Assembly (NCBI RefSeq): GCF_001194135.2 | Contig: NC_068990.1 | Location: 88,551,180-88,615,179, forward strand | DNA length: 64,000 nt | Origin: Octopus bimaculoides | Lineage: Eukaryota | Reading direction: 5' to 3' | Part shown: one piece after another, positions 205 to 64,000 of the stretch | Numbering within the stretch: position 1 is the first letter of the stretch | Layout of the letters: each line of letters opens with the position of its first letter | Program-made: the position numbers and the translations under genes | Notes under the pieces: model-generated | What the model was told of the DNA's origin: nothing | Databases searched by the model: none | What the model saw: the letters and a program-made list of their open reading frames with translations, nothing else

Positions 205-375
205 ATATTACAAGAGTTGAATGTGGACCTCCAAAAGATGTTGTTGGTGCAAAGAAGTCCTACACTAACACCTCCTATAAATCTGAAGTGACCTACACAT
301 GTCCAGGAAAAGAAATATTAAAATCGTTATGTAAAGAGAACTCTAAATGGACTCCAGTTGCATCTAATTGTAAAG
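205..375 (+). CDS. Exon S1, Sushi/CCP domain (class a)
   Basis: ctag|AT..AAAG|gtaaat; 171 nt; VECGPPKDVVGAKKSYTNTSYKSEVTYTCPGKEILKSLCKENSKWTPVASNCK (C-x-x-P, YTC, C-x5-W, C). Confidence 0.88.
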
Positions 376-2121
376 GTAAATAGGTTCTCTCTTGTTGTCT
401 TTGCCTACGTATTTTTGTTTAATTATTTTGTCAAATATTTTTGTCAGGGGAAGAATAGTTGAATCCATGACAATTTCCATTGTATTTGTGGCTGGTTTGA
501 GGGAGAGCGAAAGCTAAGCTCAGACCAGATAACTTCCCAAACATTTGTGACAGAGTGAACTTCATTGAAACTATCCAAGGATCAGGTAATGGTATTAATT
601 TTGGTGATGGATTAAACACGCCAGCCAAGAACAGCAAATGAGGAATCTTGTTCTCTCCAGCAGGCTTCTACTAGTTTCTGACCATTATATTTCATTCGCA
701 AGGCTTAGTTGTAAAGTAGATATTTAGCCATGCTACCACAAGTCCAGACAGTACCACATTAAGTTAATTTTTTTTCTACATTTACCTTTGTTCTTTATAC
801 ATTAGAAATTATTATTGTTGTTGTTGTTTTTGTTGTCTGCATTTTTGCATTTGTCTCAATTTTACTTTAATTCCAGTTACTAAGCTCCATTTTGTGAAAG
901 TAAAAGGTGCAGTTCTTGATACACCTAAGAAAACCTTGTGGGATAAGAAAAATGTAACAGCAGATGCGTGTGCACAAAAATGTCTATTTTATGCAGATTG
1001 TTTAATGTTTGAAATAGACAAAGGAAGTAGAACATGTTACTTCTCAAAGCAAAGTGCAGCTTCCTCCAAGAAATTAAAACCAATGAAAGGCAGAGATTAC
1101 TACCAACGAATAAAATGTAATTATTCTACGTGTTTCTCTTTACCTCTTTTTCTGAAATCTGTGATTTCATTTGTACTTCATAGTGTACAGAAAACCACTT
1201 CTGCAAAGACAGACAGGTTTATCTATAAGGACAGACATAAGTATATTCCAGAAATAAGCAACTTTACGAACTGTAATAACAGCCATTATTCATTTTGAAC
1301 ATTTTAAGCATGTTTTCAGTTGCTTCTTTCTCTGTGTGTAAGCAAGGAAATTCTTGTTATTTTACTTAAACCTGAGTAGTAGTAGTAGTAGTAGTAAGTA
1401 GTAAGTAGTAGTAGAGCTGGCTCAAGACAAACACCATGTCCATGGTGTTTTGGTTTGTTCTAAAACAACAGTAGTTCTCAGAGAGATGATCCACAGCAAT
1501 GGTCAATATATAAAACCACTCCATAATGAGTAGTATTCAGGCCAGGATCTTTCGTGTGATGGCAGGGTAATGCCTCTGTGATTGGAGCTTTGTAACTTTT
1601 TTCCTTATTCTTATAAAGAGTGATGTTGACTGCATTTTTGATGTCTGGAGGAAGTATACCATGCTCCCAGAATTATTCAAAAATAGGTTGTCCTTTTAAA
1701 ACTAATTATGCATCAGATGCTATATGACATTTAATGTGTCTGAGTATGAAATGTATTCCTTGTTTTCTTCCTTTTTCCTTTCTAGCGCATGATGAGATTT
1801 TACCAATTAAAAGCACTTCCATACCTGGGCAGGATACTTTTGGACAGCTGGAAAACGTGAGCTTAAAGGAGTGTGATAAAGTTTGTCATCAAACTCCAGG
1901 ATGTAAATCTTATGAGTATAAGGAAAAAGCTAAGACCTGTGATCGAAGTAATGCAACTCACTTGACACATGACCTTGAGCCCAATAAAGAGGGTTGGGAT
2001 ACTTACATCATTAGCCCAGGTCAGTAGAGTTTTTTAATTTTATTTATTGTGTGTTGCCACATATATGTGTGTGTTTGTGTGTACTTACACGTACATACAT
2101 GTGCATACAATATGCATACAT

Positions 2122-2153
<32 letters not shown>

Positions 2154-5100
2154 TTAACATCTATTTTTTATGCTGGTAGGGGTTGGCTGGTTTGACAGGA
2201 GCTGGTAAGGCCAAGAATTACACAAGGCTCCATTGTCTGTTTCACATGGTCTCCAAGTTATTAAGATAAAGGGAGCAGGTGAGTGAGGGGAGGAAATAAA
2301 CTGAGCGAGGTGTGAATGAATAGGGGTATGTAGTATGAGGCTACTTTGCTTTCAGGTGATAGAGAAGTGATGAGTGTTAGGGGATGAAGTGTGGGGGCAA
2401 GGTAGACAGGTCAGAGAGGATGGCAGTAGGGGAGGAACAGAGTCCCTCATGGACAAGCATTACCTTGGTGATTTTAAGATATCAATTTTGCTATGGTGGA
2501 TGGGTCTTCTGGAGGTGCCAAATATCTCGGTCCTATGCAATTTCCTTCATTAGGCTCAACTTCTTTATGCAGCTGTCTACATCCATACACACCACATGAT
2601 GAAATCAGTGCTTGCACACTGCATCTAATTGTTTTTATGCCTGACTTTTCTCTTAATACATGAGTGCTCTGTTGCATATGTACACTGACTTTGCACATCC
2701 AGTGGAGCAACTAACTTCATTCCTCTCAAAAATTGGTTTACATGTAATTTTATCTTAATGTGTGTGTATTCTACATGTAGTAAATGTAGACACTCACAAC
2801 TCTATATAGTAAGCCAAGAAATATTTTGCAGTTAATGGTAAATGGAATATTTCTTGATTTTGAAGTCCATGTAGGTTTGGTTAGTGAAGTACTATTTTTA
2901 TCGTTTAGGTTGCAAAAAGTATGTGTATTTGTGTTTGTGTGTGTGTGCATGCACATGCATGTGTGGTGGTTGTATCATGTTTTGAGGTGGTTTGCTGTAG
3001 ACCCTATATATGTGTGGATATAGTACTTAGTGTAGTATTTGAGATTATGCTTGCACAATAGAATATTGCTTAAGAGACAGTTACATTCTAAAGGGCAGGA
3101 TGAAGAGGTTCTACAGTTGCAGTTGTTGCCATCTTTAGGTTTTGATCCTCAATGCTTCACAGTCTCTTTCTCTCTCCCTCAGCTGTGGTAGCCAAGAATC
3201 CTCTTTTAATAGCATTTCTCACTCAGTTGAAGAGTGTAGCCGTGAGAGTTACTTCTTGACCTCACTGGTACTCATGCCACTAAAAAACACCCTGTATATT
3301 CTGTAAGGACATGTTTTCACAAAAGATTGGAAATGAATGACACTCCTTGCATGAGAGTGACAGTGAGTAGATATGTATGTCTATGCACATGCTCACTTAT
3401 TTGCTTGTATATGTTCATATAATATATAGGTATATAGGCATGTGTTGTAAATATATATATATATAAGATTATAAATTTCTTCAGTTTCTTTCACTCAATA
3501 TTATTCTCTAAATTTTTCGCGTGTGTGTATATATTGACCAGACATACATTTTATTTCATTAGGCATTATGTTACTAATAACCTATTGCTAGAACTCAAAA
3601 TATTTTGTTCCAAAGCATATGTATATTGAATTATATACATATGTATGTATATATGTATGTTTGTATGTTTATGAATATATAAATAAATATATGCATATAT
3701 TTGTATGCATATTCATACGTACAAGTATATATATAAATGTTTATGTTCGTATGTATGTATTTATATCTTCAATTTTATTCATTCATTATCTACATCTCAC
3801 CTTCCTCCTAACAAACACACTCCATTGGTATCAATTTCTCTTATCAATCCCAGATTTCTATAATACTGACTGTGGACCTCCAAAAGAAGTTGTTGATGCA
3901 GTGAAGACCTACAAAACCACCACTTATAAATCTGAAGTGTCCTATACTTGCCCAAAAGGAGAACAACTGAAGTCAACATGTGGAAAGGACAACAAATGGA
4001 CTCCAGTAGCATCTGCTTGTAACGGTAACGTAAATAGCTTCTCTTCTCTTGTCTTTGTCAAAGTAATTTTGTTCCATCTTTGCATGTTAAATGTCTTTGT
4101 CAGAGGAAGACTGAGTCCATAATAGTTTCCATGATGTTTGTGACAGGTGGGAGAGAGAGGGAAGCTCTCTTCACACCAGAGACCTCTACAAATTCTTACA
4201 AAAGAGTTTAGAGTCATAATTAGGAAAATCAATAAGAATGTGATGTTCATGTCTTTATCAAGGGTTATGTAAAGTGAACTGAACTGGACTGAGAATCAAA
4301 CTGTAATCTTTGGCTTACACCATTCATCCCATATTTATGCTAAAAGAACAACTTGGGAAAAATACTTAGGGCCACTTCCTGCATGGAAAACAAATAGTAA
4401 AGGGGCTACTTGTTCAATGAAAATATTTTTATTAATCAAAATTTCAACCTCATTTCTTGTTAAAATTAGGCTTATTCTGATCATGAAATTAAGAAGAGTC
4501 AGCCTCATAAATAAGAGAGTCAGCCTCATAAATAAGAGAGTCAGCCTCATAAATAAGAGAGTCAGCCTCATAAATATAATCACTTTTTTTTTTTTTTCAT
4601 TTCATTGAAAGTATAACTTTGATAATTTAAAATTTCTTAGCTTGCTACCTTAAGGTGTGAGTGTCCACATTTATTACATATTTATATTTATTCGTTACAT
4701 GATAGTAGAAGGAAAATTATATTGTTTCCTAGGACAAGACATGACAAAATCAGAAAAGTGATGGGTTTTAGCCTTTTCCATAGCTAGTTGCATTTAGTTA
4801 CATCTTTTTACATTCTCAGTTCAAATTCAAACAAGATGTGCTTCGTCTTATTTACTTCTGAGGTTGATAAAACAAGTGCTAGTCAAGTACTGAAGTTTAT
4901 TTATATTCACTACACAGTGTGTGGCCTTGTGTTTGAGTTAGGAACTATCTTCAGTAATATTGTTACCATTAATAATAATTATAATTATTCTTGTTATTAA
5001 GACTGATAGATTGACAGAATCATTTGAGTATCAGACAAAATGTGTTGTGTCATTTTTCTGGCGTTTTAGCTTCAGAGTTCAAATGCAACTGATGTAAGCA

Positions 5101-8100
5101 TTGCTTTTCCAGGGCCAACGAAATATGCTAGTGGTCAGGTGTATAAGTCAATTTCATTGATCAATTTCTACCTCAAAGTTTTGACCTAGATTCTTTGATG
5201 AAAAGTTATTGTTGTTGATATTGTTGCTTATTGGTTTAAATTTTCCTTTAATTCTAGATATTCTGATCCATTTTGTGAAAATAAAAGATGCAGCTCTGGA
5301 TGAAACTGGGAAAACATTGTGGAATAAGCAAGATGTAACAGCAGATGAATGTGCAGAAAAATGTTTGTCAGACCAAAAATGTTTATCATTTGAATTAAAT
5401 AAAGAAAATAGAAAATGTTACTTATCAAACAACGCTGCAAGTTCCTCCAAGAAAATAAAGAAAGCCAAAAACAAAGATTACTACCAACGAGTAAAATGTA
5501 ATTATTCTTTGTTTTATCATTGGAATTCTCTTTCCTTTTTTTCCTGAGATTTGTGATTTCATTTGTACTTCATAGTATGTAGACAGCCAAATCTGTAAAG
5601 ACATTGACAGGTTTACAAATAAGGACAGAAAAAAATGCAATATTAAGAATTGTAAATACTTTTAAGGCATTCTTACTGAGAATTTATTCACCTTGAACAA
5701 TTTTATGCATGCTTTTGATCGTATTTATATGTAAGAAAAGAAAGCGTTCTTATTTTCCTTAAACCTGAATAGTAATAATAGTGGTGGTGGTGGTGGTGGT
5801 GGTGGTGGTGGGAGTAACACTTTTATGCATAGGTTCACTTGCATTTTTATGTAAGAAAAGAAACTTCTTATTTTCCTTACACCTGAGTAGCAGTCGTGGT
5901 GGTGGCGGTGGTGGTGGTGGTGGTGGTGGTGGCAGCAACAGCTACTGTAACATCAGTTTCAGCAGCAACGGCCTTTTCATCATTTATCCATGTTTACCTT
6001 AGTGCTGTTATAGCGCAGTGCTGAGGTAATGCCAATCAATGTAGTTGTGTATTTCCTATATTTTGTCATGGTTAATATTGCAAGATCCCTTTCCTCTCAC
6101 CAACCATTATACCACACAAAGAGAGTACATTTCCACATACCTCTAGAATCAGACCAATTGTCTGCTGGGACAAAAAGAATCCTTGCTGCTTAAAATAAGT
6201 TTCTCTTCAGAATAGTTCCATGGTATGAAGAACAACACAGCAAGCAGCACAACAAGTAGTCCTACCATCTGCTGGAGGATGGTAGAGGTTTGCTCCCCTG
6301 CTTGCAATATATACAGGGTGCAGGTTGCACTGGTAACCAACTGGTGGAGGATCTGCCTAGAGTTAAAACAGTAGTAAAGTCGAACAGCCATATTGATGTG
6401 GCAATAAATGTTTCTCATTATATATAATATATATATAATGAGAATTTTTAACTGAGCTGAAGCTGCAGATGTAACTGCTATATTTATCCTGGGCACCCTC
6501 AAATACAGAGACACTGGCCTAACAATTTCAAGTAATATGAACAATCCCACTATGAATACATTTAGGAAGAATTTAACAGGATTCTTCAAGAAGTTTGATT
6601 TAAACATAAAGATTACTATCAATCTAACTACATTCAAATAACTCACAAATTGTTCCATAAATCACATGAATTCTGTTTAAGGCATCATTTTGTGGATCAA
6701 TTATTTATTTAAAATAAATTGTCCATTCACAAGTCATCTGTCACATGCTTTCCAGTATTTAATGATGTTTGTGGTGCATGTAATGTGTTTGTGATTGATT
6801 GGGTAGGTGGATGAGTATAAAATGTATTCCTTGTTTTCTTTTTCTTTTTCCAGCTGATGTACCTTTGAAGCTTAAAAGAGTTAGTGTACCAAGAATGACT
6901 ACTTTAGGACAACTTAAGAACAAGACCTTGAATGAGTGTAGTGAAGCTTGCTTTCAATATATAGGATGTAGCACTTATCAGTACAATGAGCAAACTAAGT
7001 TGTGTGATCTGAGTAATATGACTCAGTTGAGTAATGAACTTAAACCCAACAATGGAAGTTGGGATATATACATGACTTTGCCAGGTCAGTAGAAATTCTC
7101 CATTTTATTTATTGTATATGTCTTTGTGTATTTATATATACGTATACGAATGTGTATATATTTTTATATACACTAGCAAGGATACTTGATATTGCTTGGG
7201 ATTAACATATGATATGGAAAACATATGATATAAATTTGTGTTCATCATTATTTCTCCTACATTTGCTCTGTTGTATATCATAACAAGTAATACTGCTAAC
7301 TATAATAGTAATCAAACAATTATATTGAAAGTAGACTGAATGAAGATAATCTACAGGGAGGTCTAACTGTACTCACAAAAGATACTACATATATATATTT
7401 GTGCATGTGCATGCAAATATGTTTACTTTGTTCAGTCTTGTATTCTAAATTTGTCATTATCTCCTCTTTCTCACTTTTCTCCTAACATATATACACCAGT
7501 GATATTAATTTCTCTCATATCAATTCCAGTCTTGACAACAATTGACTGTGGACCACCAAAAGATGTTTCTGGTACATTGAGATCTTACAATACGACTTCC
7601 TATGAATCTAACGTAACCTATACTTGTCAAGATGGAGAAATTTTAAAGGCAGCATGTAAAGAGAACAATAAATGGGCTCCAGAAGTGTCTTGTAAAGGTA
7701 ATGTAAATAGGTTCTCTCTTTTTGACTCTGTCTTTGTAATTTTGTTTTAGTTTTGTGTTCAAAGTTTATGTCAGAGAAAGACTAGCTGTGTCCGTGACAA
7801 TTTCCATGGTATTTGTGACTGGTGGGAGGGAGAAGAGAATTCATTCTCAGACCAGAGACCTCCCCAAATTCTTGCAATACAACAGACTTCATTAAAGATA
7901 CTCAAGAGCTGGGTAATGATATTGATTTGGCTGATAGATTAAGTCTTCCACCAAAGAAAGTGTGGAAGTATTTTCTCCCCAGCAGGCTTCTGCTAGTTTC
8001 CTTCCACCAAATGTTATCAACAAAGCTTAGCTGTGGAGCAGATTTTTAGCCACAGAGCCAGAAGTCCAAACAGTGCTACAATATTATGAAGTTGACTTAT

Positions 8101-18081: not shown

Positions 18082-18115
<34 letters not shown>

Positions 18116-22427: not shown

Positions 22428-22474
<47 letters not shown>

Positions 22475-35673: not shown

Positions 35674-35709
<36 letters not shown>

Positions 35710-44549: not shown

Positions 44550-44582
<33 letters not shown>

Positions 44583-46964: not shown

Positions 46965-46996
<32 letters not shown>

Positions 46997-49272
46997 CATA
47001 TATTAAGGATTATTTTTATGTTCAATTATAATAAAAACAGTTTTACATTAATCTGATGGGTTACCCTATACTTTTGTAGGGTACAAATTTATTCTTATAC
47101 AAAAATGTTGTTGAGCAACATTGAAGTTTCAGCCAGCCAAGCCTTTGTTTGATGATGGCTTAGCAGGCTGAAACCTCAAAATCACTGTCAACAACACTTT
47201 TCTAGAAGAATAATATATATGTATATATATTAATATTTTTGAGAAAATGAAATATTGTTTAGAATGTGGAGGAAAAGAATTTTCATTTATATTTACTTAC
47301 TAGATGAAGATGAAAGTGAAATTATTTTAGTTCTTCAATGAAAAACATTCTAAAATCAGTGGAGTGATGCCTTGACTAGCCATATTTAGTTACATCCTTT
47401 TACATTCTGGGCTCAAATTCTACCAGGGTGTACTTTGCTGAGGTTGATTAAACAAGCACTGTTCAGGATCTGTGGCCCTGTGTTTAAGTTAGAAACCATT
47501 ATCATTAATATTGGAGACTTCAACAATAATTATAATTATTCTTGTTATGGGTACTGGATTGACAGAATCATTCAACCGACAGACAAAATATGTTATGGTA
47601 TTTGTTCTGGCGATATTATGTTTGAGTTCAAATCTTGTTGATGTTAACTTTGTCCTTCTTATGTCAATAAAATAAGCTGTCAGTCAAGTGTAGAGGCTAA
47701 TTTAATTGGCCAGTTCTTACCTAAAAATTTGGCTTACTTTTTATGTTAGGAATTGCTGCTGTTGCTGTTGTATTTCATTGACCTAAATGTTACTTTACCT
47801 TTAGATCCTCTGGTCCAGTTTGTGAAAATAAAAGATTCAGCTCTGGATGTACCTGAGAAAACCTTGTTGGATAAGAAAGATGTAACAGCAGATGAATGTG
47901 CAGAAAAATGTTTGTCTGGCAAAAGTTGTTTATCATTTGAAATAAATAAAGAAAATGGAAAATGTTACTTATCAAAGAAATCTGCAGCTACCGCCAAGAA
48001 ATTAAAGGCAGACAAAGACAAAGATTACTACCAACGATTAAAGTGTAATTATTCTTTGTATTTTATTATTGGAATTCTCTTTTCCATTATTTCTGAAATT
48101 TGTGATTCCATTTGTACTTTCAAACCATATAGACCCCAATTTCTATAAAGACATTGACAGGTTTACCTATGAGGCCAGATATACACACATTCTAGAAATA
48201 AGCAATATTAGAAAATATAAATACTGTTAAGACATTCTCACACAACTTTTATTTACCTTGAACAATTTGATGCATATTTTTAATTGTTTTTATATGTAAG
48301 AAAGGAAATTCTTGTTGTTTTTCTTCAGCCTCAGTAGTAGTAGTATTAGTAGTAGTGGTGGTGGTGGCATTAGCAATAACAGTAGCTTTTTCTTCATTTC
48401 TCCATGTTAGCATCACTTAGTACTGTTACAACACAATGTCTTGGCTCTAGTTTTTGTCCTTCATTATCCAGTATTCAAAATAACAGAAAATGTAATGCCA
48501 ATTTATGTAGTTGTATATTTCCTAGATTTTCCCATGGTTAATGTAGCAAGATACCCTTCCTACCACCAACCATTATACTAAATGAAGTGAGTATAGTTTC
48601 CCCATGTGTGTGCAGAGTGATATATTTATTTCTGTTTAACAAATCAGAGAAATGAAAATGGAGCAACAAACATAAGATCCCACCCTTGGGCAAGGACAAA
48701 ACACAGATTGACATACACACACACACACTTATGTATACATATATGTACATCTACAGATCTATCTTCTTAAGCTTAATTAAAATATAGTTTGTTTTTAAAA
48801 TACAAAAATTAATTATACTTAAATCCAATTTTTTGCCTTATCTATATTTTTTCAACTTTTTTTATACAATTTTTTTTTTTTTTGCATGGAACCAAAGCTA
48901 TGAAATTCCTCATGCTTTATTCTATCATTGAAGCAAAGATAAATATATTTTGCTTTTAAAAGTTATTTAGATCTAAATGTGATTGGTGGCATTACTTACT
49001 CTCCTATAATGTTACTACAAATTTTGGTGTAAACTTTTTTCTATTGGACCATATCTCAATTTTTTAATGCCAAAATGTAGCTAGGGACCAGTCCTCTTCG
49101 AAAATGTTAACAGTTTTCAATTTAGTTAAGAACTAAATTAGCGACAAACTCTGGAAGATGCTGCATGTGTGTAAATTGTGGCCTTAAGAATATTTTTCAA
49201 CTACTACCATAGTTGGATGATCAACTACTACCGTAGTTGAATGATATACATCCACATATAAATATACCCAGA

Positions 49273-49322
<50 letters not shown>

Positions 49323-54995: not shown

Positions 54996-55060
<65 letters not shown>

Positions 55061-58000: not shown

Positions 58001-60630
58001 NNNNNNNNNNNNNNNNNNNNNNNNNNNNNNNNNNNNNNNNNNNNNNNNNNNNNNNNNNNNNNNNNNNNNNNNNNNNNNNNNNNNNNNNNNNNNNNNNNNN
58101 NNNNNNNNNNNNNNNNNNNNNNNNNNNNNNNNNNNNNNNNNNNNNNNNNNNNNNNNNNNNNNNNNNNNNNNNNNNNNNNNNNNNNNNNNNNNNNNNNNNN
58201 NNNNNNNNNNNNNNNNNNNNNNNNNNNNNNNNNNNNNNNNNNNNNNNNNNNNNNNNNNNNNNNNNNNNNNNNNNNNNNNNNNNNNNNNNNNNNNNNNNNN
58301 NNNNNNNNNNNNNNNNNNNNNNNNNNNNNNNNNNNNNNNNNNNNNNNNNNNNNNNNNNNNNNNNNNNNNNNNNNNNNNNNNNNNNNNNNNNNNNNNNNNN
58401 NNNNNNNNNNNNNNNNNNNNNNNNNNNNNNNNNNNNNNNNNNNNNNNNNNNNNNNNNNNNNNNNNNNNNNNNNNNNNNNNNNNNNNNNNNNNNNNNNNNN
58501 NNNNNNNNNNNNNNNNNNNNNNNNNNNNNNNNNNNNNNNNNNNNNNNNNNNNNNNNNNNNNNNNNNNNNNNNNNNNNNNNNNNNNNNNNNNNNNNNTATT
58601 CATCCCCACAAAATTGAAAGGTAAATTTGACCTTGGTTTAATCTGAACTGATGGCCAAATGAGCCTGATTACTTATTGTAAAGCATTTCTTGTAATACTC
58701 TAATTAGTACACATCATCATCATCATCATTTAGTTTTCTATGCTGGCATGGGTTGGACAGTTTGATAGTGTCCAATGAACTGTCGAGCTGCATTAAACCC
58801 AGTGTCATCTTTGACATAGTTTCCATCACTGGATTCCTTTCCTAACACTAACCACTTTACAGTATGTACTGGATCCCTTTCCTTGGTACTAGTGAGGTCA
58901 CCAGTAACTTGCAAGACAAAATAAAGAAAGGGAAACAAAAAGACCCCTCAGCTGAGTGGGAGTGTATTTGAGAGAGTGGGAGGTATATTTGTACCATGTA
59001 TTGAAGACAAAGGTATGATAGAGCAACAAGCATAGGTGTCTTACTATAGAGGAGATACACAGCTACTCTATATTATGTGATGATGGGTAAGAGTAACTGG
59101 AAGATAGATAAAGTTGGTGGTGGAAGAGTACTAGATCTTGCTCTCAAGGTAAAAGACGATGAATATAAGGGAGAATGTAGATTGTAGATGGAGAAGGAAG
59201 AAAAGGATGGGTAATTTCATAAGGATGTTGGAAGAGATTGGGCTAGAATTGGTTGTCTTGAGTGAAGAAAGAAAATGAAGATTTGAATGCTGGTAAGTAT
59301 CGATATGAAGAGATGGAAGTGACCGAGGAAGGAGGAGGTGACAAATTAGAGTAGCAATGTCATATATTTGTTAGTAGATGAGAAATTAGGGAGGTGATAT
59401 GTCGGGTTTTATAGTGGAGGGAGGTTAGAGTATGATGAAATGTGGAAGTTATGGGTGTTGATCAATTCCTACCTCAAAGTTTTGGCTTAATTTCTATGAT
59501 GGAATATCATTTATTTTGTTGTAAGTGTTATTGTTTATTGGTTTCAATTTTGTTTTAATTCTAGATCCTCAGATCCATTTTGTGAAAGTAAAAGGTGCAG
59601 CTCTTACTGTAGCTGGCAAAATATTTTGGAATAAGGAAAATGTAACAGCAAAAGCCTGTGCAGAAAAGTGTTTGTCTGTCCCAAATTGTTTATCATTTGA
59701 AATAAATAATGAAAATGGAAAATGTTTCTTATCAAAGCAAGCTGCAAGTTCCTCCGAGAAAATAAAGAAAGTCAAAAGCAAAGATTACTACCAACGAGTA
59801 AAATGTAATTATTCTTAGTATTTTATTATTGAAATTATCCTCTCCTCANNNNNNNNNNAAGTGTTTGTCTGTCCCAAATTGTTTATCATTTGAAATAAAT
59901 AATGAAAATGGAAAATGTTTCTTATCAAAGCAAGCTGCAAGTTCCTCCGAGAAAATAAAGAAAGTCAAAAGCAAAGATTACTACCAACGAGTAAAATGTA
60001 ATTATTCTTAGTATTTTATTATTGAAATTATCCTCTCCTCATCTTCTGAAATTTGTGATTGCATTTGAATTTCTTGGAATAATTATGGACAACTATTTCT
60101 GTAAAGACATTGATAGGTTCATCTACATATAACACTAAACATAGACATGTTCCTGTAAAACAAAAACAATATTAAGAACTATAAATACTCTTAAAACATT
60201 GTCATACAGCATTTGTTCACCTTGAACATTTCTATGGATGTTTTCAGTTGTATTTTGTGTGTGTGTGTGTATGTGTGTGTGTTTGTATGAGTGGAGGTGT
60301 ATAAAATAAATTTCTCGTTTTCTATTTTGTTTCAGTTGATGAAGGGCCTGTTATGATGAAGAAGGTTGGCATACCAAAGAAGGCTACTTTAGGACAGCTT
60401 AAGGATAAGACCTTAAAGGAGTGTAATAAGGCTTGTGAACAATATACAGGATGTAACTCTTATCAGTACAATGCTGAATCTAAGTTGTGTGATCTGAGTA
60501 ATGTGACTCAGTTAACTGATGAACTTAAACCCAACGATGGAGAATGGGATATATACTTAACAAACCCAGGTCAGTAGAGTGCTTCTATTTCATTTGTTGT
60601 GTGCATGCCTTTGTGTATTTACATATATAA

Positions 60631-60668
<38 letters not shown>

Positions 60669-62589
60669 ACATCTATCTATTTATGTGTCTATTTATTTAT
60701 ATACATAAGCATATATATACAGGTATGTTGGTCGAAGCAGGAAAAATAGAACTCAAAGTATGAGTATATGTATAGCTCTAGAGAAGATTAATGGAGTTCG
60801 TTCTTTACTTCAATTGTTTGATTATGACATTTATTAATAAATGTGATTATTGTATTTGGGAACTATGATACTCCAAACTTATCAGGTAAGCTAACTGGAA
60901 TAAAATATGTAAATATCCATCATTTTTATACCTTTCCTATAGTACTCTGTAACTACATACCAGTTTACTTGGAGACTAACTTTAGGATTTACAAATTGGA
61001 CTGGTGACGTTCTGTTAAAGCATGGATTATCTGGATTTCTAAATCTATCATGGCTCAATTTTGTTTGTCTGGTTTCCTTTTCTTCACAGAGAGCTTACAA
61101 GATATTTCACCAGGCTCCTTAACCATTTCCTTTCATGTGATATATGTATGTCTGTATGTGTGTGCAGATGTCTTCAGTTTGTTATACAGTCAATATCTTT
61201 TATTCTAGATTTGTCCTTATCTCCTCATTCTCCCCCTCCTCCTCCTGCCATAGATTCACCGTTGATATCAGTTTCTCTTATCACTTCCAGTTGTTACAAA
61301 AGTTAACTGTGGACCTCCAAAGGATGTTGTTGGTGCAAAGAAGTCCTACACTGACACCACCTATAAATCTGAAGTGACCTACACATGTCCAGGAGGACAA
61401 CAGTTGAAGTCAAAGTGTAAAGATGACAATAAATGGACTCCAGTTGCATCCAATTGTAAAGGTAATGTAAATAGGTTCTCTTTTGCTGTCTCTTTCTAGG
61501 TTTTTTTATTAAATATCTTTGTCAGAGAAAGAATGACTGTATCCACGACAATTTCCATGGTATTTGTGGCTGATTAAAGAGAGAGAGAAACCTATCCTCA
61601 GAGAAGATAACTTCCTAAATCTATGCAATACAGAGAGCATAATTAAAGCTATCCAAGGTTCAGACAATGGTATTATCTTGGATAATGGATTAAATCTGCC
61701 AAACGAGAGCAGCAAGTGAGGAAGTGTGTTGTCTCCAGCAGGCTTCAGCATATTTTGTATCTAACATATTCCATTCAAAATACTTCATCACGAAGCAGAT
61801 TTTTAATTATGGAGCCATAAGTCCTCACAATACCACATTCTTGTTAAGTAAAATCTACAGCTCTACCTCAGCTAATCTTGGAAGTTTTTCTCTTAATTTC
61901 TAACTTCAGCTTTATTTCCCACACTTTGTTTCATCCTCCAAAACTCAGTACACTACAATGCACTGATTTTTCTTTACTAGAAAAACTTCTGATGCTCTAA
62001 TGGTCTTCCATTCCACCATCCTAAATCATTATGAGACAAATAATAATAGTGCTTTTAGATGGAAAAAGAGGCAACACTTTTCAATAGAAAGATGTTAGTA
62101 GCATTACCTCCAATACTTGGTTGCTATTTTGTGTTGTTGACCCACCCCTGGCAAGAATGAAACATAACTTTTGAGTTCAAATCCTGCTAATATCAACTCT
62201 GCCTTTTCAGGCCCATTAAAATTTTTAAGAAACCAGTCTAATGTAGGAATCAATTTAATTGATTAACTTCTACCTCAAATTTTTGTCTTTTTTCTACATC
62301 ATTGTTGTTTTTGGTGTTTACATTTGTCTCAATCTTCCTTTAATTCCAGTTTCTAAGATCCATTTTGTGAAAGTAAAAGGTGCAATTCTGGATGTACCTG
62401 GAAAAATTTTGGAGAGTAATAAAAGTGTAACAGCAGATGTTTGTGCAGAAAGATGTTTATCTTACAAAAATTGTTTATCATTTGAAATGAAGAGAAAAAG
62501 TGGAAAATGTTATTTATCAAAGGAAACTGCAGCTTCCTCCAAGAAAATAAAAGCAGCCAAAACCAAAGATTACTACCAACGAGTAAATG
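205..62589 (+). CDS. Interior of a giant multi-exon gene encoding tandem Sushi(CCP)-PAN/Apple-PAN/Apple repeats; 41 exons, 2883 codons in window, open at both ends
   Basis: 41 exons traced by hand, each with yAG acceptor and GT donor, all phase 1-1, all lengths multiples of 3. No internal stop and no stop at junction codons. Four conserved Cys per exon. No ATG/signal or terminal exon found. Confidence 0.88.
877..1116 (+). CDS. Exon A1, PAN/Apple domain type A
   Basis: ttccag|TT..AAAT|gtaatt; 240 nt; CAQKCLFYADCLMFEIDKGSRTCYFS...DYYQR (CxxxC-x5-C-xxF...C-Y/F-L/F PAN core). Confidence 0.88.
1786..2019 (+). CDS. Exon B1, PAN/Apple domain type B1
   Basis: tctag|CG..CCAG|gtcagt; 234 nt; CDKVCHQTPGCKSYEYKEKAKTCDRSNATH...GWDTY. 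Confidence 0.88.
2122..2255 (-). mobile_element. SINE 3' tail fragment ending in a (GAT)n tail
   Basis: (CAT)n followed by the reverse complement of a ..ccaacccatgccagcatg..gttaaatgatgatg type tail that recurs at 22250, 35730 and 58730. Confidence 0.55.
2490..2710 (-). mobile_element. RTE-type LINE 3' ORF remnant
   Basis: Minus-strand LHWMCKVSVH..LREKSGIKTIRCSVQ and MDVDSCIKK..DRDIW, matching the RTE C-terminal region also seen at 30195-30580. Confidence 0.6.
3854..4024 (+). CDS. Exon S2, Sushi/CCP (class b)
   Basis: cccag|AT..AACG|gtaacg; 171 nt; DCGPPKEVVDAVKTY...YTCPKGEQLKSTCGKDNKWTPVASACN. Confidence 0.88.
4492..4575. repeat. 21-bp minisatellite x4 (aagagagtcagcctcataaat)
   Basis: Four adjacent copies visible; paralogous introns (near 14385, 23765, 37135) carry a single related copy. 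Confidence 0.9.
5258..5497 (+). CDS. Exon A2, PAN/Apple type A
   Basis: ttctag|AT..AAAT|gtaatt; 240 nt; CAEKCLSDQKCLSFELNKENRKCYLS. Confidence 0.9.
6854..7084 (+). CDS. Exon B2, PAN/Apple type B2 (one codon shorter)
   Basis: ttccag|CT..CCAG|gtcagt; 231 nt; CSEACFQYIGCSTYQYNEQTKLCDLSNMT...SWDIY. Confidence 0.9.
7530..7697 (+). CDS. Exon S3, Sushi/CCP (class c, 56 codons)
   Basis: ttccag|TC..AAAG|gtaatg; 168 nt; DCGPPKDVSG...YTCQDGEILKAACKENNKWAPEVSCK. Confidence 0.88.
9496..9735 (+). CDS. Exon A3, PAN/Apple type A
   Basis: ttctag|TT..AAAC|gtaatt; 240 nt; CANECLTDKKCLSFEIMKKSGMCYLS. Confidence 0.9.
9975..10455 (-). mobile_element. RTE-type LINE reverse transcriptase fragment (decayed)
   Basis: Minus strand: DEMQFGF..TDAIFLVR..LYLAFTEVEKAFDRV..GVHQGLILSPLL..LLYSDYLVLIAESLSDLQKKFQVWK, with stops. 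Confidence 0.85.
10683..10819. other. Inverted repeat (about 34-bp arms) upstream of exon B3; MITE-like relic or RNA hairpin
   Basis: tttgtacacccctcttctgatggtgtgcttttgt ... acaaaagcacaccattagaaaaggaaggtacaaa; homologues at 30593-30700 and 54282-54419. Confidence 0.75.
11040..11273 (+). CDS. Exon B3, PAN/Apple type B1 (not in the ORF track)
   Basis: ttccag|CC..CCAG|gtcagt; 234 nt; CYEACYKNSECHSFEYNKKAKLCDHSNATH...GWDTY. Confidence 0.88.
12020..12560 (+). mobile_element. RTE-type LINE RT fragments (decayed)
   Basis: AIKDRKVGKAAGSSGII..., LLYLALINIEKALIRV..., KVGIDGCLMKAIQSL..SKVRV. Confidence 0.7.
13156..13326 (+). CDS. Exon S4, Sushi/CCP (class d)
   Basis: ttccag|CT..GAAG|gtaatg; 171 nt; NCAPPREIVG...YTCPHGGKLKSKCGKDYKWTSVNSTCE. 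Confidence 0.88.
13988..14158 (+). CDS. Exon S5, Sushi/CCP (class e, second of doublet)
   Basis: tttcag|CT..AACG|gtaaca; 171 nt; DCGNPKDIAG...YTCPEGEQLKSVCEKNNKWTPVVETCN. Confidence 0.88.
15029..15268 (+). CDS. Exon A4, PAN/Apple type A (very Lys-rich)
   Basis: ttctag|AT..AAAT|gtaatt; 240 nt; CAEKCLSDKKCLSFEINKENGKCFLS. Confidence 0.9.
15279..15889 (-). mobile_element. Solo LTR, 611 bp, TGTAGT...ACTACA, 4-bp TSD ATTC
   Basis: Flanked by ATTC at 15275-15278 and 15890-15893; empty site gtaattattcttagtat in paralogous introns after A8 and A12; AATAAA on the minus strand near 15385; CpG-rich interior. Confidence 0.85.
16797..17030 (+). CDS. Exon B4, PAN/Apple type B2
   Basis: tttcag|CT..CCAG|gtcagt; 234 nt; CKNSCQQYTGCNSYQYNAEAKLCDLSNVT. 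Confidence 0.9.
17640..17950 (+). mobile_element. RTE-type LINE AP-endonuclease fragment
   Basis: NVGTLK..DVWCIQEVRWR..ISGKERKCKIFWVDN..GVSIFLDEN*MDKVIKIVRMCDRI. Confidence 0.75.
18116..18700. other. Assembly gap (others: 22475-22657, 45701-45710, 46546-46964, 49323-49332, 57747-58596, 59849-59858)
   Basis: N runs, several flanked by (TA)n or (TG)n microsatellites. Confidence 0.99.
19214..19384 (+). CDS. Exon S6, Sushi/CCP (class a)
   Basis: ttccag|TT..GAAG|gtaatg; 171 nt; NCGPPKDVVGAKKSY...YTCPGGQQLKSKCKDDNKWTPVASNCE. Confidence 0.88.
19963..20202 (+). CDS. Exon A5, PAN/Apple type A
   Basis: ttccag|TT..AATC|gtaatt; 240 nt; CAERCLSDKNCLSFEITEETGKCYLS. Confidence 0.9.
20789..20940. mobile_element. 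SINE fragment (tttcagtcatttga..gtacttattctat..ctaagttac), same family as 49686
   Basis: Clear similarity to 49700-49810. Confidence 0.55.
21391..21624 (+). CDS. Exon B5, PAN/Apple type B1 (not in the ORF track)
   Basis: atctag|CC..CCAG|gtcagt; 234 nt; CDHACHQTPGCNSYEYDKKAKFCDQSNATH. Confidence 0.88.
22085..22295 (+). mobile_element. SINE 3' portion with GAT tail
   Basis: ..aaccatccaacccataccagcatgaaaaatggacgttaaatgatgatg; same tail family as 2122, 35730 and 58730. Confidence 0.6.
22823..22993 (+). CDS. Exon S7, Sushi/CCP (class b)
   Basis: tttcag|CT..AAAG|gtaaca; 171 nt; NCGLPKDIVG...YTCSDGVQLKSICQKDNKWTPVTSSCK. Confidence 0.88.
24427..24666 (+). CDS. Exon A6, PAN/Apple type A
   Basis: ctttag|AT..AAGC|gtaatt; 240 nt; CAEKCLSDESCLSFEINKKNRKCYLS. 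Confidence 0.9.
24895..25245 (-). mobile_element. Non-LTR retrotransposon C-terminal fragment (CCHC knuckle region, R4/Dong/NeSL-like)
   Basis: KIETKALICMALEQALRTNNVKYRTDNTTESDKCRMC..IVSE..LAQCKYKGHNYVARMIHWELC..WY. Confidence 0.75.
25972..26205 (+). CDS. Exon B6, PAN/Apple type B2
   Basis: ttccag|TT..CCAG|gttagt; 234 nt; CDEACSQYAGCNSYQYNKKKKICDLSNVT. Confidence 0.9.
26307..26980 (+). mobile_element. Penelope-like element reverse transcriptase fragment
   Basis: DIKGLYTGISHNEGL..LAELVLSLNCFSF..GVAMGMRMGPIYANLFVG..YIDD..FHPALKF..YKHTDSH..SHP..SIPFSQ, with stops. Confidence 0.85.
27576..27743 (+). CDS. Exon S8, Sushi/CCP (class c, 56 codons)
   Basis: ttacag|TT..AAAG|gtaatg; 168 nt; NCGPPKDVVG...YTCQKGGILKATCKENRKWAPVVSCK. 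Confidence 0.88.
29401..29637 (+). CDS. Exon A7, PAN/Apple type A (one codon shorter)
   Basis: ttccag|TT..GATC|gtaatt; 237 nt; CVEKCSSDTNCLSFEITKGSGRCYLS. Confidence 0.88.
30195..30580 (-). mobile_element. RTE-type LINE C-terminal RT/thumb fragment
   Basis: YLGHKVSSGG..WAKF*ELLPLLVT..RLYGACV*TAMLHGSETWAVT..LERNEASML..LREK. Confidence 0.85.
30970..31203 (+). CDS. Exon B7, PAN/Apple type B1 (not in the ORF track)
   Basis: atctag|CC..CCAG|gtcagt; 234 nt; CDRACLQIPGCKSYEYHEKKKFCNPSNETH; the poly-A run keeps the frame. Confidence 0.88.
32323..32455 (-). mobile_element. RTE RT fragment, reverse-complement paralogue of 12354-12481
   Basis: Reverse complement tatttagcattgatcaacttagagaaagccttaatcatggtcacatg.. 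aligns to tatttagcattgatcaatatagagaaggccttgatcagagtcacatg.. Confidence 0.75.
32550..32780 (+). mobile_element. Non-LTR retrotransposon CCHC-region remnant
   Basis: CQLCHISVENITNLINN*PKMSTMYYFLM*HDVVTNTIYNAI. Confidence 0.55.
33384..33554 (+). CDS. Exon S9, Sushi/CCP (class d)
   Basis: ttccag|TT..GAAG|gtaagg; 171 nt; KCGRPRDIAG...YTCPDREELKSKCEKDRKWTSVDSVCE. Confidence 0.88.
34695..34865 (+). CDS. Exon S10, Sushi/CCP (class e)
   Basis: tttcag|TT..AACG|gtaaca; 171 nt; DCGNPKDIAG...YTCPEGEKLKSTCEKDNKWTPIVETCN. Confidence 0.88.
35675..36114 (-). mobile_element. SINE/retroelement remnant shared with 58712-59093
   Basis: (CAT)n plus reverse SINE tail and about 350 bp co-linear with 58712-59093 in the S15-A12 intron. 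Confidence 0.65.
36115..36995 (-). mobile_element. Truncated hAT (Charlie/SPIN/GTF2IRD2-like) DNA transposon: one TIR plus transposase C-terminus with dimerisation domain
   Basis: TIR-like caggagtgtcaaac at 36115; minus strand LSHFPCC..NPFAVNVETALVQIQMELIELQCNGTLKTKY..MPQL then FGSTYLC*QLFSVMKMNKTSHRSHLTDEHLQSI; empty site gggtaagag|taactgg at 59085-59100. Confidence 0.88.
37727..37966 (+). CDS. Exon A8, PAN/Apple type A
   Basis: ttctag|AT..AAAT|gtaatt; 240 nt; 4 nt different from A4. Confidence 0.9.
38691..38924 (+). CDS. Exon B8, PAN/Apple type B2
   Basis: tttcag|TAG..CCAG|gtcagt; 234 nt; CDKACQQYIRCNTYQYNAKSKVCDLSNVT; tandem CAGTAG acceptor. Confidence 0.88.
39740..40545 (+). mobile_element. 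Internally deleted non-LTR retrotransposon (R4/Dong-like)
   Basis: PKLRYID..AE.KRI..ETN joined to RKTRKFLMMHEAHHSCADTDHLHTKR..RGLISVEDYITIELKSL..YL..SKETLL. Confidence 0.65.
40850..41020 (+). CDS. Exon S11, Sushi/CCP (class a)
   Basis: tttcag|TT..AAAG|gtaatg; 171 nt; NCGPPKDVVGAKKSY...CKDDNKWTPVASNCK. Confidence 0.88.
43489..43728 (+). CDS. Exon A9, PAN/Apple type A
   Basis: ttccag|TT..AATG|gtaatt; 240 nt; CAEKCLSDKNCLSFEIKGESGKCYLS. Confidence 0.9.
45331..45564 (+). CDS. Exon B9, PAN/Apple type B1
   Basis: ttctag|CT..CCAG|gtcagt; 234 nt; CDHACHQTPGCNSYEYKERVMFCDRSNVTH. Confidence 0.9.
45876..46046 (+). CDS. Exon S12, Sushi/CCP (class b)
   Basis: tttcag|CT..AAAG|gtaaca; 171 nt; KCGPPKDIVG...YTCPDGIQLRSICQKHNKWTPVASSCK. 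Confidence 0.88.
47805..48044 (+). CDS. Exon A10, PAN/Apple type A
   Basis: ctttag|AT..AAGT|gtaatt; 240 nt; CAEKCLSGKSCLSFEINKENGKCYLS. Confidence 0.9.
49360..49680 (-). mobile_element. Mariner transposon 3' end (TIR plus transposase C-terminus)
   Basis: TIR-like tgttgggtcatcccataaataat; minus strand PPYLLDIAPSDYHLFCSLQNHFDGK..WKSIVKNEREYILD*. Confidence 0.8.
49686..50046 (-). mobile_element. tRNA-derived SINE (CORE-like motif ggcaccttgggcaagtg), octopus-like
   Basis: Minus-strand head ggctgtgtggtaagaaacttacttctcaaccacatgattctgggttcaatcccactgcatggcaccttgggcaagtg with box A/B-like elements; family identity recalled, not searched. Confidence 0.75.
50172..50405 (+). CDS. Exon B10, PAN/Apple type B2
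   Basis: ttccag|TT..CCAG|gttagt; 234 nt; CSEACNQYLRCNSYQYNEHDKICDLSNVT. Confidence 0.9.
50638..50890 (-). mobile_element. Mariner transposon 3' end, second family
   Basis: TIR-like gatgtctgatcaataagtatccggact; minus strand LKGRRFQDVEEI..EFQECFHQWK*RWIKCVASKG.EYFKGD*. Confidence 0.8.
51145..51395 (+). mobile_element. Degenerate hAT (Tip100/ZMYM1-like) dimerisation-domain fragment
   Basis: SLSATSASCEKPLSSLKQEDNYMTCSESEEKFSNLVFISMNK..VIDEFVNKK. Confidence 0.5.
51853..52020 (+). CDS. Exon S13, Sushi/CCP (class c, 56 codons)
   Basis: ttccag|TT..AAAG|gtaatg; 168 nt; NCGAPKDVAG...YTCQDGEELKATCKENKKWAPEVSCK. Confidence 0.88.
52451..52532 (+). mobile_element. SINE 3' tail fragment
   Basis: accagttgcatactggggttgatctaatcgactggccccctccccaaaactttcgggccttgtgcctaaagtagaaaagaat interrupts the paralogous intron block; family recalled from octopus repeats. 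Confidence 0.5.
53060..53299 (+). CDS. Exon A11, PAN/Apple type A
   Basis: ttctag|CT..AAAC|gtaatt; 240 nt; CAEKCISDNTCLSFEITKKSQKCYLS. Confidence 0.9.
53933..54095 (+). mobile_element. L1/Tx1-like LINE RT C-terminal remnant
   Basis: VKLLGAYFGPE..RKLSLKVRAEVVNYYI. Confidence 0.55.
54672..54905 (+). CDS. Exon B11, PAN/Apple type B1
   Basis: atctag|CC..CCAG|gtcagt; 234 nt; 1 nt different from B7. Confidence 0.9.
55824..55994 (+). CDS. Exon S14, Sushi/CCP (class d)
   Basis: ttccag|CT..GAAG|gtaaag; 171 nt; DCGPPRDIAG...YTCPREEKLVSKCEKDKKWTVVDSGCE. Confidence 0.88.
56120..56375 (+). mobile_element. Mariner transposase N-terminal (HTH) remnant
   Basis: YGDNALPY..W..FKNGQT..STSSTDKKIQKAQEMVL..VTIDGVA..ISYHSAYEII. 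Confidence 0.65.
56380..56668. mobile_element. hAT-type non-autonomous element end
   Basis: Ends in aaaaatggttgagaacccctg (reverse complement CAGGGGTTCTCAACC, a Charlie-type TIR). Confidence 0.55.
57557..57727 (+). CDS. Exon S15, Sushi/CCP (class e)
   Basis: tttcag|CT..AATG|gtaaca; 171 nt; DCGNPKDIAG...YTCPEGEKLKSICEKDNKWSPIVETCN. Confidence 0.88.
59565..59804 (+). CDS. Exon A12, PAN/Apple type A
   Basis: ttctag|AT..AAAT|gtaatt; 240 nt; CAEKCLSVPNCLSFEINNENGKCFLS. Confidence 0.9.
59859..60041 (+). other. Exact 183-bp duplicate of 59666-59848 across a 10-N gap (assembly overlap)
   Basis: Identical sequence on both sides of the gap; starts mid-exon without an acceptor. Confidence 0.85.
60336..60569 (+). 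CDS. Exon B12, PAN/Apple type B2
   Basis: tttcag|TT..CCAG|gtcagt; 234 nt; CNKACEQYTGCNSYQYNAESKLCDLSNVT. Confidence 0.9.
61291..61461 (+). CDS. Exon S16, Sushi/CCP (class a)
   Basis: ttccag|TT..AAAG|gtaatg; 171 nt; 1 nt different from S6. Confidence 0.88.
62350..62589 (+). CDS. Exon A13, PAN/Apple type A
   Basis: ttccag|TT..AATG|gtaatt; 240 nt; CAERCLSYKNCLSFEMKRKSGKCYLS. Confidence 0.9.
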
Positions 62590-62618
62590 GTAATTATTCT
62601 TTCTGTTTCTATTTCCTA

Positions 62619-62902
62619 TAAGGAGATGTACTTGCACAGCAAGTGACCTGATCTTAGATCATGTGCTGAAACAAAAACAATTGCAGCATGGAAGGTGTTT
62701 ATAAGCCATTTAAAGCCACACAAAAGCCGTTAAATTTAAATTTAATTTGCCAAAATATTTTTGTCACTGTGAGACCGCGACCTGTTCACTGACAAAATTC
62801 TGTGCTGTATCTATTTTGGAAAATTAAATTTAAATGTTGAAGTGAATCTAACGGCTTTTGTGTGTTTCTAAATGACTTATAACACCTCCCATGCTGCAAT
62901 CG
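62619..62902. mobile_element. Foldback/MITE-like insertion, 284 bp
   Basis: Arms 62680-62757 and 62812-62900 are inverted repeats; flanked by ttctatttccta and ttctattttcta; absent at the same site after A9. Confidence 0.75.
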
Positions 62903-64000
62903 TTCTATTTTCTAGTTTTACTGAAATTTGTGATTCCATTTCTATGTCATAATATAGTCTGTTCCAATAGAACATCCTCTTTTAAGTGGGGTTAGATATT
63001 ATTTCTTAATATATATATAGAGAGAGAGAGAACTGTTTCTGTAAAGACATTGGCAAGTTTATTCATAACCACAGGCATAAACACATTCCTGAAATAAGCA
63101 ATTTTAGGAACTGTAAATACTGTTAAAGCATTCTCATACAACATTTGTTCATAAGTAACACTTTTCTGTATGTCTTCAGTTGCTTCTTTTTTGTGTGCGT
63201 GTGTAAGAAAAGAAATTCTTGTTATTTTCTTTTAATGCTGAATGCTAGTAGTAGTAGTATTAATAGTAGTAGTAGCAGCAGCAGCAGGAATTTCAAAGTT
63301 TGTTATGACGGTGTTAGTTTATATCACCAGCCTCAGTTCTTTACTGGTATTATATTGTAACTACACCAGAAGGATGAAAAGCAGTATTTCCCAATAGAGT
63401 TTGAACTTGGATTGTAAAGAGTTTGAACATGAAAAGTAAATGGCTTTTGCACAGTATTTCATTATTTGTTGCTCCCTTCTGATATGCAGACTAACAGGAT
63501 CAAATAATATTATTTCTCAGACACACACACAAGTATCACAAGCTTTTGAATGTGCATAGTGTTAGAGTTTGTTACTCTTCCAGCATTGTATGTTACAACA
63601 GGATGTGCATACACATATCCAGCTTTTATTTGAGACACCTACTTGTAACTGTTTAAATCCATCCACCTCTCTGCTGAGAGAATTCTACATAAAACCATGG
63701 TATATAGAGCAAGCTTCACTCCAACTGACGGTTTCCCTGTGAATTTCATGAGGCTTACAGCCAGTAACTTCATGGAAAGTTTCACTCAGCTTATATACTC
63801 TTTTAAGTTCATGTACAGGGAAAAGTCCACCTCAGTGTACTGTTTCATTTGGATTCTACCCAGCATAATCTGAAGCTTACTCACCAAATCCTAATCTTTT
63901 TCTACCAGAACATTTAATTGCAGTCTTTGTCTTTCTAATCCATAGAAGATGAAAAACACATACACAATGTGTACGTATACAATGAATATGTGTGTGTATA

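Follow-up and report, generated by a model that had tools for sequence, protein, structure and literature searches.

Exons that recur in one fixed order over tens of kilobases raise the question of what such DNA is: a satellite, a set of dead or falsely duplicated copies, or part of a working gene. The question is posed here by a window of 64,000 nucleotides (nt) from Octopus bimaculoides (RefSeq assembly GCF_001194135.2, contig NC_068990.1, positions 88,551,180 to 88,615,179 of the forward strand), in which exons for Sushi and PAN domains alternate from near one end to near the other. The window is probably an internal stretch of one very large octopus gene, an array of Sushi and PAN exons that grew stepwise, whose copies are old and whose reading frame is under selection.

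A tblastn search with the peptides of the first three exons gave 41 exon-sized matches in the window (G+C content 34.4%), all 41 on the + strand, and each exon encodes one domain: Sushi in S exons and PAN in both A and B exons. A 42nd match, at 59859–59999, is a false partial A copy created by the assembly. Along the window the exons read S A B, S A B, S A B, S S A B, a series that occurs three times and is then followed by S A; the resulting superunit of four cassettes comprises 13 exons, about 915 amino acids (aa) in five Sushi and eight PAN modules, and about 20 kb. Units start at 205, 19214, 40850 and 61291 (genomic periods 19009, 21636 and 20441 bp) and the coding lengths of units 1, 2 and 3 (U1–U3) are 2745, 2745 and 2748 nt, reproducing exactly the order, starts and lengths given in a preliminary description of this DNA. 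S exons are 171 nt long, except in cassette 3 of all three units, where they have 168 nt (56 codons), as that description had also said of one Sushi class; A exons have 240 nt (237 once) and B exons 234 nt (231 once). The S doublet, said to lie always in the fourth cassette, does so in all three complete units, and the proposed motif classes hold in alignments: B exons of cassettes 1 and 3 carry THL...[GD]WD, those of cassettes 2 and 4 carry QY.[GR]C...TQL...WD, and A exons of cassettes 2 and 4 start with D.

Every exon length is a multiple of 3 and all 41 exons are phase 1-1, each with an AG acceptor and a GT donor (82 of 82 splice sites canonical); spliced together, they form a frame of 8649 nt with no stop codon. 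One domain per exon, a single symmetrical phase and introns included in the duplicated block make up the anatomy of an exon-block super-repeat, while the fixed head-to-tail order SAB SAB SAB SSAB, three times complete and then restarting, is that of a higher-order repeat. Nowhere in the 64 kb did an initial or final exon, an exon outside the repeat or a stop codon appear.

A single S exon matches the Pfam Sushi family (PF00084) with 24.4 bits (cut-off 20.7) over profile positions 1–56 of 56, and an A and a B exon match Pfam PAN_1 (PF00024) with 43.3 and 28.7 bits respectively (cut-off 21.4). All 16 S exons have 55–56 whole codons (56–57 residues including split junction codons), four invariant cysteines and an invariant W in K-W, and exactly four cysteines are invariant in 13 of 13 A exons and 12 of 12 B exons; across the 41 exons, 164 of 164 are kept. 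PMC9249922 describes the PAN core as having four to six cysteines. With four each, the A and B exons fall within this range. The apple subtype of PAN, of the factor XI and prekallikrein type, has a third disulfide joining the N- and C-terminal ends of the domain; the A and B exons do not belong to this strict subtype, having four cysteines only and none close to either end. Weak matches among solved structures were the Sushi modules of CR1 (best for the S exon) and the PAN domain of Eimeria MIC5.

Units 2 and 3 are collinear over 8.0 kb at 87% DNA identity, and unit 1 is collinear with each of them over 7.4–9.0 kb at 81%, the alignable DNA being confined to exons and their flanks. Protein identity is 81% between U2 and U3 and 68–69% between U1 and either; in unit 4 (U4), 63512–63982 is 92% identical to 44047–44520 of unit 3. 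The units are diverged tandem paralogues, and the danger raised in the preliminary description, that they might be uncollapsed haplotypes, is ruled out by DNA divergence of 13–19% between units. The broader suspicion that they are assembly artefacts, whether haplotypes or falsely duplicated scaffolds, draws on a gapped assembly with seven runs of N in the window, one of them a proven unmerged overlap. It is hardly credible given that divergence (with about 8 of 20 kb alignable), unit proteins just 68–81% identical, intron lengths that differ up to several-fold among units, and a collinear orthologue of unit 1 and the following U2-type S1 exon in Octopus sinensis.

All seven N runs are intronic, the nearest starting 19 nt after the donor of exon 57557–57727. 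Because all exons are phase 1-1, the frame is independent of gap length, and each gap has on its two sides exons that the 13-exon order places next to each other. Across the gap at 18116–18700 (585 N) the junction from B4 to S1 is direct in the O. sinensis gene model. Microsatellites flank this gap (TA-type, 18085–18115 and 18701–18715) and that at 22475 ((GT)n, 22428–22474 and 22658–22680), another adjoins the gap at 49323 ((AT)n, 49276–49318), and the right flank of the gap at 46546–46964 reads as a TA repeat; gaps of this kind are most simply unresolved simple repeats. The gap at 59849–59858 (10 N) is flanked by an exact 183-bp duplicate (59666–59848 = 59859–60041) and is an unmerged contig overlap, which gives rise to the false partial A4 copy; once the overlap is removed, the true A4-to-B4 intron of U3 would be about 338 bp instead of 531 bp.

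The order of duplication was read from trees with bootstrap, built from single exons by neighbour joining and from concatenated S+A+B exons of each cassette (c1–c4). In the concatenated trees, c1 and c3 are split from c2 and c4 with a bootstrap of 100%, c1 and c4 each form a monophyletic class (88.5% and 90%), and U2 and U3 pair at 100% in every class. The single-exon trees group S1, S3, S4a and S4b at 97–99.5% and A2 with A4 at 82%, and divide the B exons into B1/B3 and B2/B4. With exons masked, the introns of same-position cassettes share about 0.55–2.1 kb at 80–89%, and c1 with c3, and c2 with c4, share about twice as much intron as do odd–even pairs. Silent divergence falls into three levels: 0.10–0.26 within a class, 0.27–0.33 for c1–c3 and c2–c4, and 0.42–0.45 for odd–even pairs. 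Since S4b is nearest to S2, and S4a is about equally distant from every other S class, S4a is the extra exon of the doublet.

The internal dimer of dimers that the preliminary description saw in the 13-exon superunit is thus supported by the 100% split, the intron pattern and the three levels of silent divergence. The separate S, A and B trees that it called for recover S1, S3, S4a and S4b as position classes and leave the U1 copies of S2, A2, A3 and B3 without a supported place in theirs. Its staged growth, from monomer to dimer to tetramer plus S, is largely right; that unequal crossover drove it is what we infer, as a reasonable mechanism. The term satellite-like was an overstatement. In satellite higher-order repeats the copies are 95–100% identical and the monomers 50–80%, the units being far more alike than the monomers inside them; here, the 81–87% DNA identity from unit to unit is barely above the 72–80% from cassette to cassette.

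Some tracts are much more alike than the units that contain them. The B3 exons of U2 and U3 differ by one base over about 280 bp (the exon and about 25 bp on each side), with flanks at about 85%, and the S1 exons of units 2–4 have a synonymous divergence (dS) of 0–0.03, where the unit average is 0.11. The longest stretches of exact identity between units measure 196, 191, 171 and 165 bp; no other identical non-coding stretch between units is as long as that of 191 bp (44330–44520 = 63792–63982), which lies in the A1-to-B1 introns of units 3 and 4. Local gene conversion is the simplest reading of these tracts, and it brings with it the question of whether the position classes mirror continuing concerted evolution more than duplication order, in which case the trees would hold no record of the passage from monomer to dimer, tetramer and array. 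Beyond the conversion-like tracts at B3 and S1, this is favoured by the greater uniformity of cassette 4 (dS 0.095) relative to the other cassettes (0.19–0.26) and by an O. bimaculoides B exon near the 3' end of the array (L003:250), which nests in the window's B4 clade in joint trees with O. bimaculoides exons (these have no support values and served for this placement only) and is closer to U1 B4 (86% aa identity) than is the O. sinensis orthologue (77%). The introns, however, repeat the pairing of c1 with c3 and of c2 with c4, which exon conversion does not explain, the tracts are short (about 0.2–0.3 kb) against 20-kb units, and between species 12 of the 13 exons of unit 1 remain 1:1 orthologues. 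Concerted evolution as the main source of the classes is therefore fairly unlikely, and duplication order is preferred.

The age of the units was judged from a cross-species comparison at the protein level, covering unit 1 and U2 S1 (the O. sinensis gene range is 152 kb). Residues 1–971 of the window protein (U1 and U2 S1) align exon for exon, with one gap, to residues 1666–2637 of O. sinensis LOC118764742 (P0009) at 83.4% identity. Unit 1 by itself is 83.6% identical to its O. sinensis orthologue, against 68–69% to units 2 and 3; the exon outside the 1:1 pattern is S4b, marginally closer to an O. vulgaris paralogue (85.5% against 83.9%). Unit 1 thus resembles its O. sinensis counterpart more than it does U2 or U3, and U2 and U3 (81%) are about as diverged as the orthologous pair. 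The amplification is therefore old, and at least the split of unit 1 from units 2–4 is older than the divergence from O. sinensis. A copy number that differs between individuals, as in the intragenic repeats CR1 LCR1 and LPA KIV-2, had been thought possible in the preliminary description; it has no support here, in one assembly, and is not favoured by the age of the units, although the stretches of exact identity between them, of up to 196 bp, would permit unequal exchange.

Strong protein matches are limited to uncharacterised proteins of O. bimaculoides, O. vulgaris and O. sinensis. An exhaustive search with the last O. bimaculoides model of the array (P0002) added LOC118764742, LOC106869390 (an older O. 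bimaculoides model), a 4470-aa O. vulgaris model and proteins of Argonauta hians, its weaker matches covering a Sushi pair only or a GON domain only. The family has apparently been found so far only in octopods, and literature searches on octopus and cephalopod PAN, apple, sushi and GON proteins found no paper on it. The period SSAB SAB SAB SAB occurs three times in O. sinensis P0009 and also in O. bimaculoides locus L001, and exon order is less regular in locus L004 and in the O. vulgaris model. L004 (CM046610.1 88,419,073–88,462,322) reads AB SAB SSAB SAB SSAB SSAB S, with doublets of Sushi in cassettes that follow each other; the 13-exon period therefore does not hold evenly throughout the locus. 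Argonauta hians P0036 (356 aa) has a signal-peptide-like N-terminal start followed by A-B-A-B PAN pairs with no Sushi; the PAN pair may be the older module and the Sushi exon a later addition.

Two observations could suggest that the exons are decaying relics of a dead array, coding in look only. The ratio of non-synonymous to synonymous substitution (dN/dS) is 0.83–0.87 between units, close to neutral, and 0.70–0.89 at deeper levels, and exon divergence is similar to that of the intron flanks that can be aligned (9.1% and 11.7% respectively for U2–U3; 16% and 15% for U1–U2). When the observed substitutions were placed at random on one unit, however, 18–30 stops arose and none of 2000 simulations stayed open, compared with no stop observed in the 8649 nt. 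The canonical splice sites, exon lengths that shift by 3s only, the invariant cysteines and the orthologous frame, which stays open in O. sinensis, all argue against decay, and a dead array is very improbable. The blastn gaps within exons were dropped as a measure of insertion and deletion, exon lengths being identical and the gaps alignment noise. The preferred reading, a maintained frame, is thus one in which fold and length are read as selected while surfaces can vary freely, or perhaps are driven to vary.

The following history would account for these data. With phase 1-1 exons, whole-exon blocks could be gained or lost by misaligned recombination with the frame intact. An S-A-B cassette would first have become a pair of odd and even cassettes, and the pair would then have become four cassettes, with the extra Sushi exon (S4a) in the fourth. 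The 13-exon block of about 20 kb would next have been copied in tandem, presumably by unequal crossover. Since then, amino acids in the copies have changed almost as fast as silent sites, selection has retained every frame, splice site and cysteine, and a handful of short tracts has been re-homogenised, most likely by gene conversion.

The array extends well beyond the window. Four O. bimaculoides loci across CM046610.1 88,248,156–88,825,828 (about 570 kb) all contain + strand S, A and B exons, and the best long matches of the window to the O. bimaculoides loci examined are at 75–87%, none of them identical; the nesting of L003:250 in the window's B4 clade fits O. bimaculoides, and not O. sinensis, as the source. 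Gene models of the array have 1133, 709, 1865, 761, 4083 and 1067 aa; those whose sequence was read (P0001, P0002, P0005 and P0006) start mid-domain and have no signal peptide, and the last (P0002) ends in a Pfam GON domain, outside the window. Downstream of this end lies a CACHD1-like gene (L003 37416–41495; dCache_1 and CACHD1_C families), which could help to locate the array by synteny in other cephalopods. Orthologue chaining alone (from the tail of L004 to O. vulgaris P0003 and on to O. sinensis P0007 and P0009) would place the window about 2400 aa into the 4083-aa model. This model and that of 1865 aa, its neighbour in L004, are absent among the protein-search hits, though necessarily close relatives.

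Public annotation divides the array into at least six separate NCBI genes, no transcript spanning them was seen, and the array could accordingly be a cluster of separate tandem genes. This is quite unlikely, as P0001, P0002, P0005 and P0006 begin inside a domain and have no signal peptides, the exons are all on one strand and phase-compatible, the 64 kb show neither an end exon nor a stop codon nor any exon outside the repeat, the distinct C-terminal GON domain is present in the last model only, and several models break at N runs of the loci. The O. bimaculoides array is probably one giant secreted protein split into fragments by annotation. At its fullest extent, with the whole array of about 570 kb forming a single gene for a secreted protein of about 20,000–26,000 residues (extrapolated from the coding density of the window, where 62 kb encode 2882 aa), with about 25 super-repeats of 13 exons or more and a GON end, this is a tentative possibility, on balance rather doubtful; if true, the product would be among the largest animal proteins, its sequence evolving almost freely apart from its cysteines and annotated as many 'uncharacterized' fragments.

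The spliced product is 15% lysine, with an isoelectric point of about 9 and about 11 N-x-S/T sites per unit. It is predicted to be a lysine-rich, N-glycosylated 'beads-on-a-string' protein with one disulfide-bonded domain per bead, and to be secreted. It may act as a multivalent protein of the extracellular matrix, of mucus or in adhesion.

Several points weigh against a single old, stepwise-grown and selected gene, and they temper our confidence. No 5' end or signal peptide was seen for the gene, and its unity is argued from the orientation, the phase and the truncated look of gene models at the four loci rather than in the stretches between them; Logan fragments were rejected as complementary DNA (cDNA) evidence, being genomic since they read through into introns. 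Gaps could conceal whole 13-exon periods, so that the copy number in the window is uncertain and should be taken as a lower bound. Short-read assembly, instead of conversion, could have produced the near-identical tracts, and a dN/dS near 0.85 would fit weak constraint too. In the trees, the U1 copies of S2, A2, A3 and B3 join their own position classes without support, and cassette 4 of U1 is closer to U2 and U3 (84–90%) than are cassettes 1–3 of U1 (75–83%); this uneven closeness makes the history a mosaic and not a clean series of duplications.

Table 1. Superunits, exons and the assembly artefact of the window (window coordinates).
Feature	Position	Strand	Remarks
Superunit 1	205..19213	+	13 exons, 2745 nt coding, 19009 bp; orthologous to O. 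sinensis LOC118764742 residues 1666-2580
Superunit 2	19214..40849	+	13 exons, 2745 nt coding, 21636 bp
Superunit 3	40850..61290	+	13 exons, 2748 nt coding, 20441 bp
Superunit 4 start	61291..64000	+	S1 and A1 exons only; window ends ahead of B1
U1 S1 Sushi exon	205..375	+	171 nt
U1 A1 PAN exon	877..1116	+	240 nt
U1 B1 PAN exon	1786..2019	+	234 nt
U1 S2 Sushi exon	3854..4024	+	171 nt
U1 A2 PAN exon	5258..5497	+	240 nt
U1 B2 PAN exon	6854..7084	+	231 nt
U1 S3 Sushi exon	7530..7697	+	168 nt, 56 codons
U1 A3 PAN exon	9496..9735	+	240 nt
U1 B3 PAN exon	11040..11273	+	234 nt
U1 S4a Sushi exon	13156..13326	+	171 nt; extra S of doublet
U1 S4b Sushi exon	13988..14158	+	171 nt
U1 A4 PAN exon	15029..15268	+	240 nt
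U1 B4 PAN exon	16797..17030	+	234 nt
U2 S1 Sushi exon	19214..19384	+	171 nt
U2 A1 PAN exon	19963..20202	+	240 nt
U2 B1 PAN exon	21391..21624	+	234 nt
U2 S2 Sushi exon	22823..22993	+	171 nt
U2 A2 PAN exon	24427..24666	+	240 nt
U2 B2 PAN exon	25972..26205	+	234 nt
U2 S3 Sushi exon	27576..27743	+	168 nt
U2 A3 PAN exon	29401..29637	+	237 nt
U2 B3 PAN exon	30970..31203	+	234 nt; near-identical to U3 B3
U2 S4a Sushi exon	33384..33554	+	171 nt
U2 S4b Sushi exon	34695..34865	+	171 nt
U2 A4 PAN exon	37727..37966	+	240 nt
U2 B4 PAN exon	38691..38924	+	234 nt
U3 S1 Sushi exon	40850..41020	+	171 nt
U3 A1 PAN exon	43489..43728	+	240 nt
U3 B1 PAN exon	45331..45564	+	234 nt
U3 S2 Sushi exon	45876..46046	+	171 nt
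U3 A2 PAN exon	47805..48044	+	240 nt
U3 B2 PAN exon	50172..50405	+	234 nt
U3 S3 Sushi exon	51853..52020	+	168 nt
U3 A3 PAN exon	53060..53299	+	240 nt
U3 B3 PAN exon	54672..54905	+	234 nt; partner of near-identical tract in U2 B3
U3 S4a Sushi exon	55824..55994	+	171 nt
U3 S4b Sushi exon	57557..57727	+	171 nt; 850-N gap starts 19 nt past donor
U3 A4 PAN exon	59565..59804	+	240 nt
U3 B4 PAN exon	60336..60569	+	234 nt
U4 S1 Sushi exon	61291..61461	+	171 nt; exact tracts with U2 S1 (196 bp) and U3 S1 (171 bp)
U4 A1 PAN exon	62350..62589	+	240 nt
Assembly artefact, outside gene	59849..60041	.	10-N gap and exact 183-bp repeat of 59666-59848

The introns hold some further features. A 117-bp tandem duplication (50402–50634, two copies, 80% identical) starts 4 nt before the donor of U3 B2, and within it the donor context CCAG/GT recurs at about 50519–50526; since a stop is met immediately past the real donor, this second donor-like site cannot lengthen the exon. 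A 21-bp minisatellite (4481–4576, 4.4 copies, 96% matches) lies in the S2-to-A2 intron of U1. Open reading frames (ORFs) of 113–133 aa occur in two introns of unit 2, at 36650–36991 (−), 39746–40129 (+) and 40158–40559 (+); of the introns that bear them, S4b-to-A4 measures 2861 bp against 870 bp in unit 1 and B4-to-S1 1925 bp against 721 bp in unit 3. These ORFs look like transposon remnants, that at 36650–36991 presumably resembling the C-terminus of a hAT-type transposase; Pfam gave no match above its cut-offs for them, nor for any of the five longest intronic ORFs of the window. Scans of the window for transfer RNA genes and Rfam families gave no match.

The array is a clean, intact case of symmetrical-phase exons growing a protein through nested block duplication, whose three levels still show in exons, in introns and at silent sites. 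The locus to which it points is large and seemingly confined to octopods, and current annotations break it up; long-read re-annotation would probably merge the fragments into a single giant extracellular protein. Amino-acid change that is close to neutral, in a protein whose frame and cysteines are strictly maintained, is seen in fast-evolving binding or coating proteins, which makes the gene a candidate in the octopus for mucus, egg coat, adhesion or recognition.

Among known systems, alpha-satellite higher-order repeats and the Olduvai (NBPF) triplets also consist of diverged monomers in fixed order, head to tail. Alpha-satellite copies are 95–100% identical and non-coding, whereas those of the octopus are 81–87% identical and their exons are held open by selection. 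In the giant proteins titin and nebulin, too, single-domain exons are duplicated as a set series, which gives the domains a higher-order period; they differ in being intracellular muscle proteins built of Ig/Fn3 or nebulin modules, in contrast to an extracellular Sushi/PAN protein known only from octopods.

The GON domain is common to ADAMTS9, ADAMTS20, GON-1 and the octopus model P0002, and is carried also by small cuttlefish proteins (GON-Sep-2) and by a 1226-aa fibrillin-3-like gastropod protein. The Pfam families listed for P0002 are PAN, Sushi and GON, so that it has no protease or thrombospondin repeats and is not a member of the ADAMTS/GON-1 family. PAN matrix proteins such as LET-653 of Caenorhabditis elegans, described in PMC4970718 as a PAN-domain secreted glycoprotein of the apical matrix, are the most likely functional analogy. 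LET-653 is small and combines PAN with a ZP domain; no ZP domain was seen in the octopus protein, and the resemblance is at the domain level only.

The nearest analogue is human CR1, which like the octopus gene has tandem blocks of Sushi exons of about 18–20 kb inside its coding region, a fixed set of modules per block and an extracellular product. The CR1 block consists of seven Sushi modules only, in contrast to the five Sushi and eight PAN modules of the octopus block. Each long homologous repeat of CR1, made of Sushi modules, comes from one intragenic low-copy repeat of 18 kb, and these blocks are gained and lost as units, their number varying between people (PMC3265835). The octopus blocks are far more diverged (81–87% DNA identity) than those of CR1, and the common homology is the Sushi fold only. 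The exon-block repeat itself is real and old, and of a kind known from CR1, titin and nebulin.

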